Shown: positions 11,599-59,739 of the stretch, piece after piece
Numbering within the stretch: the first letter of the stretch is position 1
Layout of the letters: each line of letters opens with the position of its first letter
Sequence record: NC_061447.1
Length of the DNA stretch: 64,000 nucleotides
Reading direction: 5' to 3' (one strand)
Program-made: the position numbers and the translations under genes
Notes under the pieces: model-generated
Seen by the model: only the letters and a program-made list of their open reading frames with translations
What the model was told of the DNA's origin: nothing
Databases searched by the model: none

Positions 11599-11635
11599 TT
11601 AAACTCCTTATAGCTTCAAAGAGACAGTCTATAAA

Positions 11636-12127
11636 TTAGAGAGCGAGACCTTTCAGGAGCAGACGGGCAGCAGCCGTGAACTGTTTCTTTTTGAGTTCAG
11701 GCAGCTTGCTGTAGCGGTCAAGGATATCCGACAGGCCAAGATCGTTTTCATCATCAACAACGTTTTCGTCATCGACATAATGACCTTCTTGACCTGCAAC
11801 ACCGTCGTCGCCTTTCTGCCAGTTAGCTTTAGTGACAGTCAGGCGGAAGGTACCACGAAATTCTTCTTTGATACGGCCAGGCACGGCCGTAGGGATACGC
11901 ACGGCAGTGTGGTTGAGGTCTGCAATACGCTGCACGGCAAAACCATCAGGGAACGCATCGAAAACAGCGGTCAGATCAATATCAGCCTGATTGTTTGGTG
12001 CAGGCGATTTTGCAACAAACGAAACAATAAACGTTTCACCGCCATCTACATCATACTGTCCATCCATAATGATTTTTGGATTGGCGCGTAACGTGTTGAC
12101 GATAAGAGTATGCAATGGATCGAACAT
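11636..12127 (-). CDS. Hypothetical protein (163 aa)
   Basis: GAGG RBS, tiles the operon. Confidence 0.7.
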   Translation of the reverse strand: MFDPLHTLIVNTLRANPKIIMDGQYDVDGGETFIVSFVAKSPAPNNQADIDLTAVFDAFPDGFAVQRIADLNHTAVRIPTAVPGRIKEEFRGTFRLTVTKANWQKGDDGVAGQEGHYVDDENVVDDENDLGLSDILDRYSKLPELKKKQFTAAARLLLKGLAL

Positions 12128-14761: not shown

Positions 14762-15207
14762 TAATCACCTTTATCAGTTACGAGAATCGGACTCTCAGGA
14801 GTCTTGTTCGGCATCGCAAAGAAACTGCCATGCTCGTCTCGGTAAATTAGCAGACCCCCAGAAGGACCTTCAATAGGGCAGGTGAAGTTGTATAGTTTTT
14901 CGAGTGGTGGCATATAGCCTACAGTCACAGCGTTAAACGTACACCACTTCGCGGACACTTCAAGCAATGAGCCGACAACTGTATCGGCCAAACGTAGATA
15001 CGATTGTTTGAAGTGGTAGCTGTGTTCGATTGGCGCAACGCTATCAATGTCCAGCGTATCACCATACACAGCTTTATAAATCAGGCAGAAACGACGACGC
15101 CCACGCGGGGCATTAGGTATTTCATACAGCACATCGTGTATGAGTGAAGAAACGTCCCCAACGAGGACGTTTTTCTTGACCACCAGCTGGGCCATTTTAT
15201 TTGTCAT
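14761..15207 (-). CDS. Hypothetical protein (148 aa)
   Basis: Overlaps both neighbours by start/stop coupling. Confidence 0.65.
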   Translation of the reverse strand: MTNKMAQLVVKKNVLVGDVSSLIHDVLYEIPNAPRGRRRFCLIYKAVYGDTLDIDSVAPIEHSYHFKQSYLRLADTVVGSLLEVSAKWCTFNAVTVGYMPPLEKLYNFTCPIEGPSGGLLIYRDEHGSFFAMPNKTPESPILVTDKGD

Positions 15208-28972: not shown

Positions 28973-29005
28973 ATTGATCTCCTAAATACAGTTCTATTTA
29001 CAGAC

Positions 29006-30684: not shown

Positions 30685-30730
30685 TGTCATCTCCTGAATG
30701 TTTCGACAATTGAAATTAGTAAACTTAGGG

Positions 30731-34285: not shown

Positions 34286-34369
34286 GATCATCCTCTACTG
34301 GGTCTAGTAATCATATCGAGTAAAAATTAGCGACTAAGGCCTGTTTTACCCTACATGATTGCTTTACAT

Positions 34370-36305: not shown

Positions 36306-36314
36306 AAAAATTAG
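36306..36314 (-). promoter_or_regulatory. [C/A]TAATTT[T/C] motif (representative; also near 5232, 7681, 11633, 30712, 34322, 37116, 43011, 43914, 49888, 59663)
   Basis: Recurs 20-70 nt upstream of mostly virion-type genes, often just after a terminator. Confidence 0.6.
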
Positions 36315-37049: not shown

Positions 37050-37167
37050 GGTTATTTCCTCAAGTTACAATTGAACTTTCGTCCTTAGGACATTAAGTTT
37101 TTGAAATCAGCATGTAAAAATTAGTATAATCCCTGAAACTTTTCTCAGGAATTTTCCTAAATCTTTT

Positions 37168-38256: not shown

Positions 38257-38283
38257 AGGTTTCTTTGACTGCTATTTACAGAA

Positions 38284-39549: not shown

Positions 39550-39588
39550 GTTAAATATTTACAGAAGCACGTCCTTGTGCCACAACAG

Positions 39589-43866: not shown

Positions 43867-43934
43867 GGTTTCCACCTCAGGTAGATTAAGGATAATGTGC
43901 TACGCCTTAGTCTAAAATTAGCTGCGGAAATGAC

Positions 43935-48373: not shown

Positions 48374-48435
48374 GGTTAAAGCCCAAGTATTGGTGTTAAT
48401 GATACTCGTTATTTACAGTTTTGATCGGTATAGAC

Positions 48436-49853: not shown

Positions 49854-49918
49854 TATTGTCTTCCAGCGCTATTGTGAATTGTGGATTAAAATTAGCGTTG
49901 AGTCAGACATTTCTGAAA

Positions 49919-49958: not shown

Positions 49959-51248
49959 TTACTTCTTCTTTTTCTTTTTAGCTTTCTTCTCTTTGGGTTC
50001 GTCGTCTTCGTCGTCGTTACCCAAATCAACCACCAGCTTGCCGCTATAGATATCAGACATGGTTCTGGTGGTCACAGTTTCCAGCATGATATCTGCTGGC
50101 ACCGATGTAGAGTTGAATGCTACTTCGGCTTCTGCTAATGCGGATTGCAGATACACCAAACTGACCAGATTGACTTTGATGTTGTCTTTCTTGACCATGT
50201 TCATGAACATCTTGAGGCCAGCCGACTGCCACTTATTCGTTTCGGCATAATGCCCCAACACACCGTGAATAATCCAACGAGCTTTCGCTACGATTGCACG
50301 AGGGTTGTTCGCTTCACGCAGGAACTGAATAACACCGATCAGGTCCATCGCAAGATACGCACCGATCATCTGGACAGCTTTCGCTTCCATATCGATCTCT
50401 GGATCTGCTGCTGCGAGTTCGGCAACGAGGTTCTTATCGAAGTCCTCACCACCTTTCACCGAAGCGTAGATGTTCTGCAACATGGTGATTGCACCACGCA
50501 TCTGGCCACCAGCATATTCAGCAACCTGATGCAATGCTGCGTCTGCTTTATCACGCGCCTTATCTTTCTTCGGCATGATATCAAGCTGGTCACTGATCTC
50601 CAACAGACGCTTATGAATCACGTCAGTAGGAATCGGCCTGATAGGTAGTTGCGTCATGCGGCTGATCATCGTGTTCTTCATCTTCTCTGGGTTCGTTGTT
50701 ACGAAGATGAATACAACGTGCGCTGGTGGCTGCTCGGTGATCTTAAGGAACTTCGATTCGGCTGCGCTGGACATGAGGTGCGATTCGTCGAAGATGAATA
50801 CGCGACGTTTGAACATCGGACTCAATGGTGCGCTGTCCACAATCTTCTGCGAGCCGTCAACTTTACCAGCTTCACCGCCCATATCGAACTCTTGCTCGTC
50901 AGGGTGTGCGCCGCGGTCGTGCATCTCACACGAACGACATTTGCCACAGGCCGAGAACGATTCACAGTTGATGTACTTCGCTACCAGACGTGCAAACGTT
51001 GTTTTACCAGAACCGAGATGACCAGTAATGATCATCGTTGATGGAATCGTTTTCGACTTCTGCCAACCTTTCATGATCTTAACGATGTGGTCTTGACCAA
51101 CATAGTCTTCAATCTTCTTCGGTCGGAATTGATCTGCAAAGTTAATCGTGGTCAACTCTACAGACTCGGAAGAACCGCCTTTCTTTTTCGATGGCTTATC
51201 GTCACCGAACGAACGCGACTTCTTCTTTTTCTTTTCTTCTTTCGCCAT
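49959..51248 (-). CDS. dnaX: Clamp loader ATPase, DNA polymerase III gamma/tau-like (429 aa)
   Basis: FRPKKIEDYVGQ, TGHLGSGKTT (Walker A), zinc module INCE...CGKCRSC, IFDESHLMS (Walker B), EQPPAHVVFIFVTT, TMISR. Confidence 0.92.
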   Translation of the reverse strand: MAKEEKKKKKSRSFGDDKPSKKKGGSSESVELTTINFADQFRPKKIEDYVGQDHIVKIMKGWQKSKTIPSTMIITGHLGSGKTTFARLVAKYINCESFSACGKCRSCEMHDRGAHPDEQEFDMGGEAGKVDGSQKIVDSAPLSPMFKRRVFIFDESHLMSSAAESKFLKITEQPPAHVVFIFVTTNPEKMKNTMISRMTQLPIRPIPTDVIHKRLLEISDQLDIMPKKDKARDKADAALHQVAEYAGGQMRGAITMLQNIYASVKGGEDFDKNLVAELAAADPEIDMEAKAVQMIGAYLAMDLIGVIQFLREANNPRAIVAKARWIIHGVLGHYAETNKWQSAGLKMFMNMVKKDNIKVNLVSLVYLQSALAEAEVAFNSTSVPADIMLETVTTRTMSDIYSGKLVVDLGNDDEDDEPKEKKAKKKKKK

Positions 51249-51303
51249 TTTACTTCGCCCTATAGTTTTGATGCGTTACACCTGATATTTACAGATTTTA
51301 GAC

Positions 51304-51390: not shown

Positions 51391-51588
51391 TTAGGCAAAG
51401 CTCATTTCCCAGCGTGGTACCACGCGGAAGAATTGCTTAAAGTGGGACGGCGGGTTCTGCTTGATGGACTCAAGTTTCTTTTCCACAACGTCGTAATCTT
51501 TTATGCCACTCTCAACAGTGTGAGTGGTGAATGTACCGTCAGCCTGAATCAAGTCGGCGACAACACGGTAGCTTGGTCTACGAAGCAT
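51391..51588 (-). CDS. Hypothetical protein (65 aa)
   Basis: AGGAG RBS; CTGTAAACA variant motif upstream at 51629. Confidence 0.6.
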   Translation of the reverse strand: MLRRPSYRVVADLIQADGTFTTHTVESGIKDYDVVEKKLESIKQNPPSHFKQFFRVVPRWEMSFA

Positions 51589-51682
51589 CTATTCTCCTGT
51601 GCTAAAAATTTCTCGTTCTTCTGAATTATGTTTACAGTTTACTGCGAGTAGTCACACAAGAATAAAGTCAGAAAAGTCTTAA

Positions 51683-52012
51683 ACTCCAATAGGCTCTCCG
51701 TGAAAAAACCTATTGGAGTCCACCCTCGCCAGATGACGGTCTAGCCAGGGCTTTCTCCCCGTGTCTTTCGAATGCACCGACACGGTAGCGCTTGCGGTCT
51801 TACGCCCTTTGCGGCTTGCGAACTTATCGGCAGGTAGCAGCGTTCGCAGCCTAGAGCAGCCGCTTTCGGCCATTAGCGATAACGCGGTGTTACGCTATTT
51901 GGCCTAGGGTGACTCTGGGCCGAGTCTGTACAAAAAAGAGTTCGGCCTATCCCCAAATTCGGCAAAAGAAACAGGCCGAACTAAACAGTCAGCACACACT
52001 CCGTATGCGCTG
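51683..52012 (-). ncRNA. Candidate structured non-coding RNA (multi-branched, unassigned)
   Basis: Lies in a 470-nt intergenic gap. A long-range helix GAGTCACCCT/AGGGT(G)GACTC closes about 190 nt containing several hairpins. GNRA-type loops and G-U pairs mostly fit the minus strand. Flanked by 10-bp perfect hairpins. Confidence 0.55.
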
Positions 52013-52060
52013 TTTTGTACTGTTACAAATTAGAAACATTGTGAAATATTCAGACAATTC

Positions 52061-52648
52061 TTAACCCAACATCGGGAGAAGATTTTGCAAGAAATGTTTC
52101 TTGTCGAATGACGTAATTCGGTGAGGATGATCAATGTGCGTGTTCCATCCTTTGGTAAACAGCATCACATTGTTAGGCAGCTTCAACTGATCGCCGACGC
52201 GTGTGAACTTGTCGCGCACCGCAGTAACAGGATTGTCGTCAACCAGAATCCAAGTACCTTCACCGAACTTCTCATTCAGGTAGGCAATCTTATCAGGATG
52301 CTGGCGACTGTCCAGAACTTCGATATGGTCGAACAACGACAGGTGTTTCTCCAGAGCCTTACGCGTGTTGCGTTCACCTTTAGCGTGATAGCCACGATGC
52401 GTACAAATGCCGACGCTGAAACCGTCACGCACCAACATCGCAACAGTCTGGATGAAGTAGTCACGCATGTTGGCTTCAAACATGAAGCGGCCATCTTCCA
52501 ACATTTCGACGAAAGGCTCATGTCCATTCTCTGGCGTGATGTACGTGTCAGTGCCTGGGTAGATTCCCCAGTTCATCAGATAGCACAACATGAAGTTATG
52601 CGTATCAAACGCCGTGTCGTCCATGTCGAAGAAAATATATTTGATCAT
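52061..52648 (-). CDS. HAD-superfamily hydrolase, 5'(3')-deoxyribonucleotidase-like (195 aa)
   Basis: Motif I YIFFDMDDT, motif II ICTHR, motif III K (PDK), motif IV LVDDNP. Confidence 0.8.
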   Translation of the reverse strand: MIKYIFFDMDDTAFDTHNFMLCYLMNWGIYPGTDTYITPENGHEPFVEMLEDGRFMFEANMRDYFIQTVAMLVRDGFSVGICTHRGYHAKGERNTRKALEKHLSLFDHIEVLDSRQHPDKIAYLNEKFGEGTWILVDDNPVTAVRDKFTRVGDQLKLPNNVMLFTKGWNTHIDHPHRITSFDKKHFLQNLLPMLG

Positions 52649-52992
52649 TAATGCCTCGTGCTTTTAACTACCAGAGGAATATCATTAATGAATGCCATTG
52701 TCAGCAACTCACCATTGTGGCGCAATCGCATTTCATCGGCATTCATAACGATAGCAATATCGGCGAGAGGATCTACCTTGAAGATTGGGACTTCGAAAAG
52801 CTGTGCTTCCAATTCGCTTTCTTCGTCATCAACAACGTAGTAGCCTCCGTACATTAACACAGTGTCACCTGAATCTACGAGGTGACCAATGATGCGCTCG
52901 TCACCATCCACGATCATGTGGAGTGGTTGGTCGATGTAGTAACCACTATCATCGTCCGCACCAAATTCAAAGTCGAAATCCTCGTCGCCCAT
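52648..52992 (-). CDS. Acidic hypothetical protein (114 aa)
   Basis: Coupled to the next gene (TAATG). Confidence 0.65.
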   Translation of the reverse strand: MGDEDFDFEFGADDDSGYYIDQPLHMIVDGDERIIGHLVDSGDTVLMYGGYYVVDDEESELEAQLFEVPIFKVDPLADIAIVMNADEMRLRHNGELLTMAFINDIPLVVKSTRH

Positions 52993-59640: not shown

Positions 59641-59739
59641 AAAAGTTCTCCTCTGTGTGCTTGAAATTAGTGACTAAGAATTTTGGACCTTTGCCCTGAC
59701 AAATACTTATTTAGTGTATGTTAAAACGAGGAGCCTAAC

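Follow-up and report, generated by a model that had tools for sequence, protein, structure and literature searches.

Classical H-type pseudoknots with an A/U-rich third loop are known from the autoregulatory leader of T4 gene 32 and from the SAM-II and preQ1-II aptamers. The proteins of jumbo phages are intensively studied; to our knowledge, almost nothing is known of jumbo-phage non-coding RNAs. This report concerns a structured RNA predicted in Erwinia phage pEa_SNUABM_33 (MZ443779), a 263-kb Alexandravirus. The window is the whole stretch of DNA that was analysed: 64,000 nucleotides (nt) of record NC_061447.1, identical to this phage over the part queried. The RNA lies on its minus strand from about 52020 to 51683 (~340 nt; 250-470 nt in relatives), in an intergenic gap flanked by two minus-strand coding sequences (52061-52648 and 51391-51588). 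It combines a predicted H-type pseudoknot with a 3′ strand that can pair with either of two partners. An earlier note on this DNA, made by a model from the letters, had placed an unassigned structured phage RNA in a gap of 470 nt; the intergenic position holds, and the measured length is 472 nt.

The RNA is a previously undescribed family without an assignable class. Rfam 15 (4227 curated families) gave no match across the whole window at gathering thresholds. With E values up to 10, this RNA and four distant members gave noise only: 14-20 bits, against thresholds of 38-88. The classes covered by Rfam and left unmatched include tRNA, tmRNA, RNase P, 6S, signal recognition particle RNA, introns, riboswitches, ribozymes, GOLLD/ROOL, HEARO and ToxI. 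ARAGORN found no tRNA or tmRNA gene. These negatives agree with the earlier note, in which no match to tRNA, tmRNA, RNase P, 6S or intron cores had been seen. Literature searches found no description of this RNA.

Selection on RNA structure

Comparison of homologs shows strong RNA-level selection for a multi-helix architecture, predicted for the minus-strand transcript. Across 14 sequences, the model of the whole RNA has 80 pairs, 32 of which carry compensatory double changes, and 93% of the cells are canonical. Shuffling never reached this score (0/1000); slid partners gave 34-41% canonical cells and 5-10 compensatory pairs. For the 3′ domain (26 sequences), 89.9% of cells are paired, 18/28 pairs have changed on both sides, and covariation scores 0.444, whereas shuffles score 0.192 (0/500) and slid partners 0.05-0.14. 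All sequences belong to a narrow clade, and many of these counts therefore reflect few independent events. Covariation among homologs is strong.

Folding energy, composition and the kind of mismatch tolerated point the same way. Relative to dinucleotide shuffles, z is -6.4 for the minus strand and -3.8 for the plus strand; in the Yoloswag, Yen9 and JA29 copies it is -9.1, -4.0 and -3.8, and the RNA beats its shuffled controls in all four lineages. The core has a GC content of 54-59% (flanks, 35-42%; whole window, 48%), which bears out the GC-richness first noticed. Over the supported helices, 105 G·U cells are found against 8 A·C cells, a ratio that fits selection on the minus-strand transcript only. 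Folding, covariation and the lack of a family match together support the central claim of the earlier note, an unassigned structured phage RNA on the minus strand.

The universal core comprises hairpin P5, a GUAAGA bulge closed by P6, the H-type pseudoknot, a GGAG strand, hairpin Px, an ACUCC strand and the 3′ hairpin Pt. The structure drawn earlier lacks the pseudoknot, P6 and the switch, and parts of it fall. Its long-range helix (GAGTCACCCT with AGGGT-G-GACTC) can be drawn in this sequence and fails on comparison: it has no compensatory pair and 32/140 non-canonical cells, a deletion in SNUABM_30 removes the ACCCT half, and the covarying Px competes with it. The proposed AGGGC/GCCCT helix has 19/70 non-canonical cells; AGGGC pairs instead with GCTCT (outer part of P5, 3/5 pairs compensatory), and GCCCT with AGGGT (in Px). 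The GAAA, GCAA and GTAA loops are not hairpin-closing tetraloops in the supported model. Two intermediate candidates, P4 (GGCCG/CGGCU) and P2 drawn as GGCC/GGCC, were superseded by P2b, P6 and GACUC/GAGUC after more divergent sequences.

The pseudoknot and the alternative 3′ helices

The H-type pseudoknot occupies 51759-51791 (minus). It is formed by strand a (51787-51791) and strand b (51774-51778); the latter is part of the loop of hairpin Ph (51779-51785 with 51759-51765, minus). The stem of Ph is the CCGTGTC/GACACGG pairing recognised in the earlier note; 5-6 of its 7 pairs are compensatory, a count lowered by a few distant rows that are misregistered by 1-2 columns. In all 14 lineages examined, a stretch of 5-8 nt just 5′ of Ph can pair with the 5′ side of the Ph loop to form the pseudoknot stem. 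Loop lengths are 0-6 nt (L1), 0-3 nt (L2) and 4-9 nt (L3), and L3 is A/U-rich. Compensation is seen between relatives that can be aligned: GCGCU/GGUGC in the window against ACGUU/GACGU in Y3 (double compensatory changes in 2/5 pairs), GGCGCG/CGCGCC in Yoloswag against GGCGCC/GGCGCC in S5, and GUGCG/CGCAC in JA29 against GUGCC/GGCAC in L335.

Just 3′ of the pseudoknot lies X, the GGAG at 51755-51758 (minus), for which 0/76 cells are broken when it is paired with CUCC. Hairpin Px follows (51722-51751, minus; loop ACCGUCAU at 51733-51740), with 8/10 pairs compensatory across the 26 sequences. Its inner part is GCTAG/CTGGC, most of the GCTAGA/TCTGGC pairing already proposed. In state I (51715-51758, minus), X and the 5′ strand of Px pair with a central strand that ends in ACUCC (51715-51719). 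The state-I helix in this window consists of 4 base pairs (bp), an internal loop of 2-3 nt and 5-7 bp; it is continuous over 10-12 bp in Yen9, JA29, UV63 and L335. In state II, the central strand ACUCCAAUAGG pairs with the downstream strand X′, CCUAUUGGAGU, a GGAGU strand. The resulting hairpin is Pt (51683-51719, minus; 51679-51722 with a 3-pair extension), which is the 3′ hairpin that had been placed at 51684-51718. The outer 7 pairs of Pt are invariant in the 26 sequences, the inner 4 covary, and the extension covaries with the central strand in JA29, L335 and Yen9.

The X:central and central:X′ helices cannot coexist, and each of them covaries, as in alternative pairing of the attenuator type. 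Comparison shows that the ACUCC central strand can pair with upstream X or with downstream X′ and that compensatory evolution maintains both pairings. Going from JA29 to L335, the central strand changes U to C, and X and X′ each change A to G in compensation; one and the same 10-mer serves as X and as X′ in Yen9. State II is more stable than state I by 5-13 kcal/mol in 9/9 lineages tested. State I can form first, since X′ is transcribed last. A switch had been among the functions suggested in the earlier note, and this three-way covarying alternative pairing supports it directly.

The 5′ domain and the remaining helices

The 5′ domain (51928-52020, minus) is closed by P0 (52013-52020 with 51928-51935), which encloses hairpins hp1 and hp2. 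P0 is invariant within the Alexandra/Y3/S7 group and is CGUAA/UUACG in Yoloswag and S5. Hairpin hp1 (51990-52012, minus), the 5′ hairpin of the earlier note, has 3/7 compensatory pairs, no broken cells and a loop with an invariant GGAGU. Hairpin hp2 (51939-51982, minus), also drawn there together with its T-run, has 5-6 compensatory pairs of 11-12 and is followed by a U-tract (51932-51937); it is terminator-like. Among close relatives (AD1, SNUABM_1 and SNUABM_2 included), the tract has 5 to 12 residues: its presence is conserved, its length is not, a variation expected from homopolymer slippage.

The hp2 loop has a C-rich core, UCCCUCU, in Yoloswag, SNUABM_5 and fHe-Yen9-02 (L052:1285-1300, L054:1283-1297 and L053:775-790, respectively, all minus). 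The full string AAUCCCUCU is found in the hp2 loop of SNUABM_5 and fHe-Yen9-02. The UCCCUCU-containing string recurs in the pseudoknot of Yoloswag and SNUABM_5, where it makes up loop 1 together with the 5′ strand of Ph. The shared string may be a further alternative pairing or a duplication.

P2 (51911-51926, minus) is a GACUC/GAGUC hairpin, with both strands present in 19/19 aligned gaps. It is kept in Lg339/N340, where the alternative GGCC/GGCC pairing is lost; being invariant, it provides no covariation evidence. P2b (51901-51904 with 51868-51871, minus) encloses P3, has 0/76 non-canonical cells and shows G-C to G·U changes on either side. P3 (51875-51896, minus; loop ACACCGC) corresponds to the TAGCGTAAC/GTTATCGCTA pairing of the earlier note and has 2/8 compensatory pairs. 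The conserved P3 loop of pEp_SNUABM_52 (L012) contains a 10-nt tandem duplication, GTAACACCGC (columns ~185-194 of alignment A1), which is absent from the near-identical Y3.

P6 (51860-51863 with 51794-51797, minus) closes P5 and the GUAAGA bulge and covaries widely. Its variants are GCGG/CCGC, GUGG/CCAC, GCGAGG/CCUCGC, GCGCGG/CCGCGU, GGCGAG/CUCGCC and GAACGAG/CUCGUUC; S25/S7 have matched 2-nt insertions on both strands. The bulge itself (51798-51803, minus) is near-invariant, and UAAGAC is invariant in 25/26 sequences. P5 (51804-51857, minus) has the loop GCUACCUG at 51831-51838. Its inner part, previously proposed as GGCTGCGAAC/GTTCGCAAGCC, has 7/10 compensatory pairs and its outer part 3/5. 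JA29-type RNAs have a second three-segment alternative pairing (L063:805-870; L055:1375-1440, minus; L335:3092-3165). In UV63 its segments are GUUCGUU, GAACGAG and CUCGUUC, and a 5′ hairpin competes with P6.

Candidate promoter motifs and the proposed transcription unit

A promoter-like CTAATTT motif (52027-52033, minus) lies 6 nt upstream of the GUAC at 52020, the predicted 5′ end of the RNA. The motif that had been marked upstream at 52026 is real and part of a recurrent one. The window holds 10 copies, 10/10 on the coding strand and mostly 25-45 nt before start codons (all minus: 11633-11639, 14844-14850, 30713-30719, 34324-34330, 36308-36314, 37118-37124, 43915-43921, 49889-49895, 52027-52033 and 59664-59670). 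CTAATTT is a candidate promoter class for this phage clade, unannotated in the records examined. At the RNA locus, CTAATTT-N6-GTAC is conserved with a variable N6, even where it overlaps the end of the upstream gene, and CTAATTT is also found in JA29, UV63 and L335.

A second motif, CTGTAAAYA, has 11 copies in the window, against 0.87 expected. Ten are on the coding strand, mostly upstream of genes (for example, minus, 51629-51637, 51286-51294, 48410-48418, 39556-39564, 38273-38281 and 28995-29003). It precedes the two genes downstream of the RNA, which encode a protein of 65 amino acids (aa) and the clamp loader. The record of Pseudomonas phage Lu11 annotates this motif as 'putative middle/late promoter'; phage sigma factors and the use of host RNA polymerase are reported for this clade in the PaBG paper (PMC7412058).

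The order in JA29, UV63 and L335 is RNA, strong intrinsic terminator, CTGTAAA motif, clamp-loader gene. The gene 3′ of the RNA varies by lineage: the 65-aa gene, an extra open reading frame (ORF) or the clamp loader directly. This variability argues against a gene-specific leader, and the promoter motif, the JA29-type terminator and the variable neighbour point to a stand-alone RNA gene. P0 uses the GUAC beyond the U-tract and its outer part changes compensatorily (Yoloswag, S5), which indicates that read-through transcripts are under selection. We infer that host RNA polymerase transcribes the RNA as a stand-alone gene, using a CTAATTT-type promoter dedicated to it and starting near 52020.

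Proposed function and alternative explanations

The reading preferred here is that the RNA is a stand-alone regulatory or sensor RNA that acts in trans during infection, with a probability of about one half. Host RNA polymerase would start near 52020 at the CTAATTT-type promoter, and JA29-type transcripts would end at their own intrinsic terminator. The X:central helix would form first in transcription and stack beside the pseudoknot. Synthesis of X′ would then allow Pt, the more stable hairpin, to take over, unless state I is held. The pseudoknot/GUAAGA/P6 core would be a binding surface for a protein or a small ligand, setting the equilibrium between the states. The RNA would then act in trans as a regulatory RNA or as a component of a ribonucleoprotein, not as the leader of one particular gene. 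A narrower proposal, which should be regarded as speculative, is a free-standing sensor class: the core would bind a metabolite, a signalling molecule or a host or phage protein and so choose the 3′ conformation. Such a sensor could, for example, time the expression of replication genes, release or hide the GGAG strands, or titrate a host factor or a defence signal. If true, it would be the first riboswitch-like device that is its own gene and not an mRNA leader.

The following points weigh against the stand-alone reading. Both ends of the RNA, 5′ and 3′, are predicted. The terminator-like hp2 lies ~85 nt past the predicted start in most lineages, and much transcription may thus stop before the core. 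Alexandra-type phages have no terminator after Pt, so that the RNA may also form the leading portion of a longer mRNA. The 3′-domain alignments were fitted to the model, and part of the covariation was counted there. The per-lineage shuffle p for the pseudoknot ranges from 0.002 to 0.27, which is modest for some lineages, and the cross-lineage complementarity control has no discriminating power because every pseudoknot strand is GC-rich; the case for the pseudoknot therefore rests on its ubiquity, its geometry and the compensatory events. As a partner, the 65-aa protein is without a recognisable fold family and is absent beside the JA29-type RNA.

Known classes were also looked for individually. 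ToxI-like tandem repeats (34-45-nt unit) are not seen: Tandem Repeats Finder gave 0 rows for 51500-52150. PADLOC gave 0 matches for the six neighbouring proteins searched. No reverse transcriptase, IscB/TnpB or IS110 gene, as would accompany a retron/DRT, omega or bridge RNA, is among the ten proteins scanned within ~6 kb, which include the HAD phosphatase, the 65-aa protein, the clamp loader, a peptidase and SbcC. A sponge of the CsrB/RsmB type is not indicated by six GGA in ~340 nt (counted by eye; ~5 by chance); the conserved GGA sites are those of the hp1 loop and the junction GGAG only. Host mimicry, suggested by a likeness to 16S helix 27, was rejected as unsupported; blastn found no similarity to E. 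coli genomes or plasmids.

Two alternatives keep the RNA and change its unit of transcription. One, doubtful and overlapping with the stand-alone reading, divides the locus into two units: the 5′ module (promoter, hp1, hp2 and U-tract) would be a small RNA (sRNA) of ~90-110 nt and/or the terminator of the HAD operon, the core would be made by read-through or processing only, and the GGAGU of hp1 may pair with the ACUCC of the core. A GC-rich covarying stem followed by 5-12 U is typical of an intrinsic terminator, a hairpin and a terminator right after a promoter are the usual sRNA layout, and the U-tract is longer than P0 requires; moreover, the GGAGU of the hp1 loop and the ACUCC, both invariant, are complementary to each other, and JA29-type RNAs are without the 5′ module. 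Against this division, P0 requires the GUAC past the U-tract and is compensatory there in Yoloswag and S5 (CGUAA/UUACG), and no second promoter motif lies between hp2 and the core. The other, judged unlikely, is a cis-acting riboswitch or attenuator, in which the core senses a ligand or protein and X/central/X′ gates transcription into the 65-aa gene and the clamp loader. Three-segment exclusive pairing compensated in both partners is a hallmark of expression platforms; the Alexandra-type Pt was flagged as terminator-like, no other terminator lies between the RNA and the 65-aa gene, and the locus belongs to a block of replication and nucleotide-metabolism genes. Yet Pt has no U-tract in 6/7 lineage types (Yoloswag, S5, Yen9, JA29, UV63 and L335), and the tail that follows it in this window is UUUAAGAC. 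The downstream gene varies and has its own CTGTAAA promoter motif, the strong JA29-type terminator closes the unit before the next promoter, and no riboswitch class matched in Rfam. Control of a ribosome-binding site is excluded: the GGAG of X′ has no start codon within usable reach.

Other alternatives change the nature of the element. It is improbable that it is a new kind of ribozyme whose active site is built from the pseudoknot and the invariant nucleotides of GUAAGA and GGAG. Invariant single-stranded nucleotides do adjoin the pseudoknot, and the neighbouring HAD phosphatase matches phrog_415 ('polynucleotide kinase'), known members of which act on the ends of nucleic acids; but no ribozyme family, self-cleaving or other, matched even at E up to 10, the sequence bears no mark of a cleavage site, and HAD homologs elsewhere occur without the RNA, among DNA-metabolism genes. 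Nor is much weight given to an RNA-only assembly like ROOL, GOLLD or OLE, in which X′ of one molecule would pair with the central strand of another to give dimers or larger forms. ROOL and GOLLD form homo-oligomers by cryo-electron microscopy (bioRxiv 10.1101/2024.12.08.627333), which counts in its favour, as do a large, ornate, GC-rich, phage-encoded RNA and the duplicated X and X′, which would permit strand swapping. The RNA is, however, much smaller than ROOL, GOLLD and OLE and does not match their models, the intramolecular Pt is always possible and very stable, and no palindromic kissing loop is evident. Least credible is that the element is not an RNA at all but either works as DNA (as a replication origin, a packaging site or a palindrome bound by protein) or codes for a small protein. 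The arms of Pt form a long inverted repeat conserved in sequence, a possible target for a dimeric DNA-binding protein, and the locus lies among replication genes; on the other side stand the G·U:A·C ratio of 105:8, which means selection on one strand, and the covariation of many helices, the pseudoknot included. A replication origin was rejected, the locus having no GC-skew turn, repeats or iterons. For a gene speak the ORFs annotated across the region in three relatives: YOLOSWAG_203 (L052:1052-1216), fHeYen902_106c (L053:482-688) and pEaSNUABM5_00214 (L054:1064-1189), all small and hypothetical. They differ in position and strand between phages, are thus probably spurious, and would need correction in the three public records. 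The ORF of 64 aa in the window (51679-51873) has frameshifts or stops in 13/13 relatives compared, and the homologous stretches have a length that is not a multiple of three in 7/13.

Neighbouring genes and distribution

The RNA locus is within a block of replication and nucleotide-metabolism genes. The interior of the gap has zero annotated features in 13 related records (of 46 with a match). The gene upstream (52061-52648, minus) encodes a HAD-family phosphatase of 195 aa that matches phrog_16292 and phrog_415 and has an invariant DxDDT motif. Downstream are the 65-aa gene (51391-51588, minus), then the clamp loader (49959-51248, minus) and, further on, SbcC. Sequence searches with the 65-aa protein found no family, Pfam domain, PDB relative or recognisable fold family. 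PDB, NCBIfam and PADLOC searches with the neighbouring proteins gave no hint of an RNA partner.

HAD homologs in other jumbo phages adjoin DNA ligase or topoisomerase genes, which makes the HAD phosphatase probably a nucleotide-metabolism enzyme unrelated to the RNA. A functional link between the two was rejected: the HAD homologs of Vibrio, Yersinia (YerA41) and Klebsiella phages have no RNA 3′ of the gene. Compared with PaBG, Lu11 and HRDY3, a 114-aa gene, the HAD gene, the RNA and the 65-aa gene (51391-52992, minus) form an insertion-like block, which sits between peptidase-linked genes and the clamp loader.

Blastn found the gap at 70-100% identity in Alexandravirus, Sasquatchvirus (Y3) and Snuvirus. 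Synteny of the flanking proteins led to much more divergent copies: Yoloswag, pEa_SNUABM_5 (Rivsvirus), Yersinia phage fHe-Yen9-02 and Dickeya phage JA29 (Salmondvirus). Pattern scans, alignment of the HAD protein and the 3′-domain covariance model R1 added three metagenomic lineages (UV63, UV82 and L335); a further five contigs (Logan or NCBI) came from variants of the 65-aa protein. The covariance model has 121 positions, represents the 3′ domain and was run on sequences already collected. Exact-pattern scans of IMG/VR gave the same clade and chance matches in coding regions, except for UV63, UV82 and L335. Among the matches listed from pattern scans of metagenome and genome contigs, nhmmer filtering left nothing new. 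The homologs occupy the same locus (Alexandra-, Sasquatch-, Snu-, Yoloswag-, Rivs- and Salmondviruses, fHe-Yen9-02 and metagenomic relatives). In the more distant clade members PaBG, Lu11 and HRDY3, genes are tightly packed at this position, with no gap and no RNA. As far as seen, the family does not extend beyond a single small clade of jumbo phages, those of Erwinia, Dickeya and Yersinia.

Comparison with known systems

The RNA has a fixed locus in the replication module of phages in development against fire blight and soft rot. A pseudoknot joined to a switch of which both states are protected by compensation is a clear candidate for a new regulatory mechanism, and two candidate promoter motifs are gained for the clade.

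Like CsrB/RsmB and 6S, the RNA would be a gene to itself, with a predicted promoter and, in the JA29 type, a predicted terminator. The A(A/C)GGAGU motif of its hp1 loop resembles a CsrA/RsmA site; unlike CsrB/RsmB, it conserves two or three GGA elements, about the number expected by chance for its length, and has no Rfam match. Unlike 6S, it has no long duplex with a central bubble. With GOLLD and ROOL it shares a phage origin, a length of several hundred nt, many helices and a GC content above that of its surroundings; it differs in being smaller (250-470 nt), restricted to one clade and one syntenic locus, and without a match to their covariance models.

The pseudoknot has the S1-L1-S2-L2-S1′-L3-S2′ order of classical H-type pseudoknots, with short L1 and L2 and an A/U-rich L3 of 4-9 nt that suits minor-groove contacts. 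It differs from them in being embedded in a larger RNA, between P6 and the switch, and shows no sequence similarity or Rfam match to them. As in riboswitch and attenuator platforms, a pseudoknot core is followed by a strand with two alternative partners, both kept by compensation. In contrast to those platforms, the 3′ hairpin mostly has no U-tract after it, no ribosome-binding site or start codon is controlled, the core belongs to no known aptamer class, and the genes downstream vary and have their own promoter.

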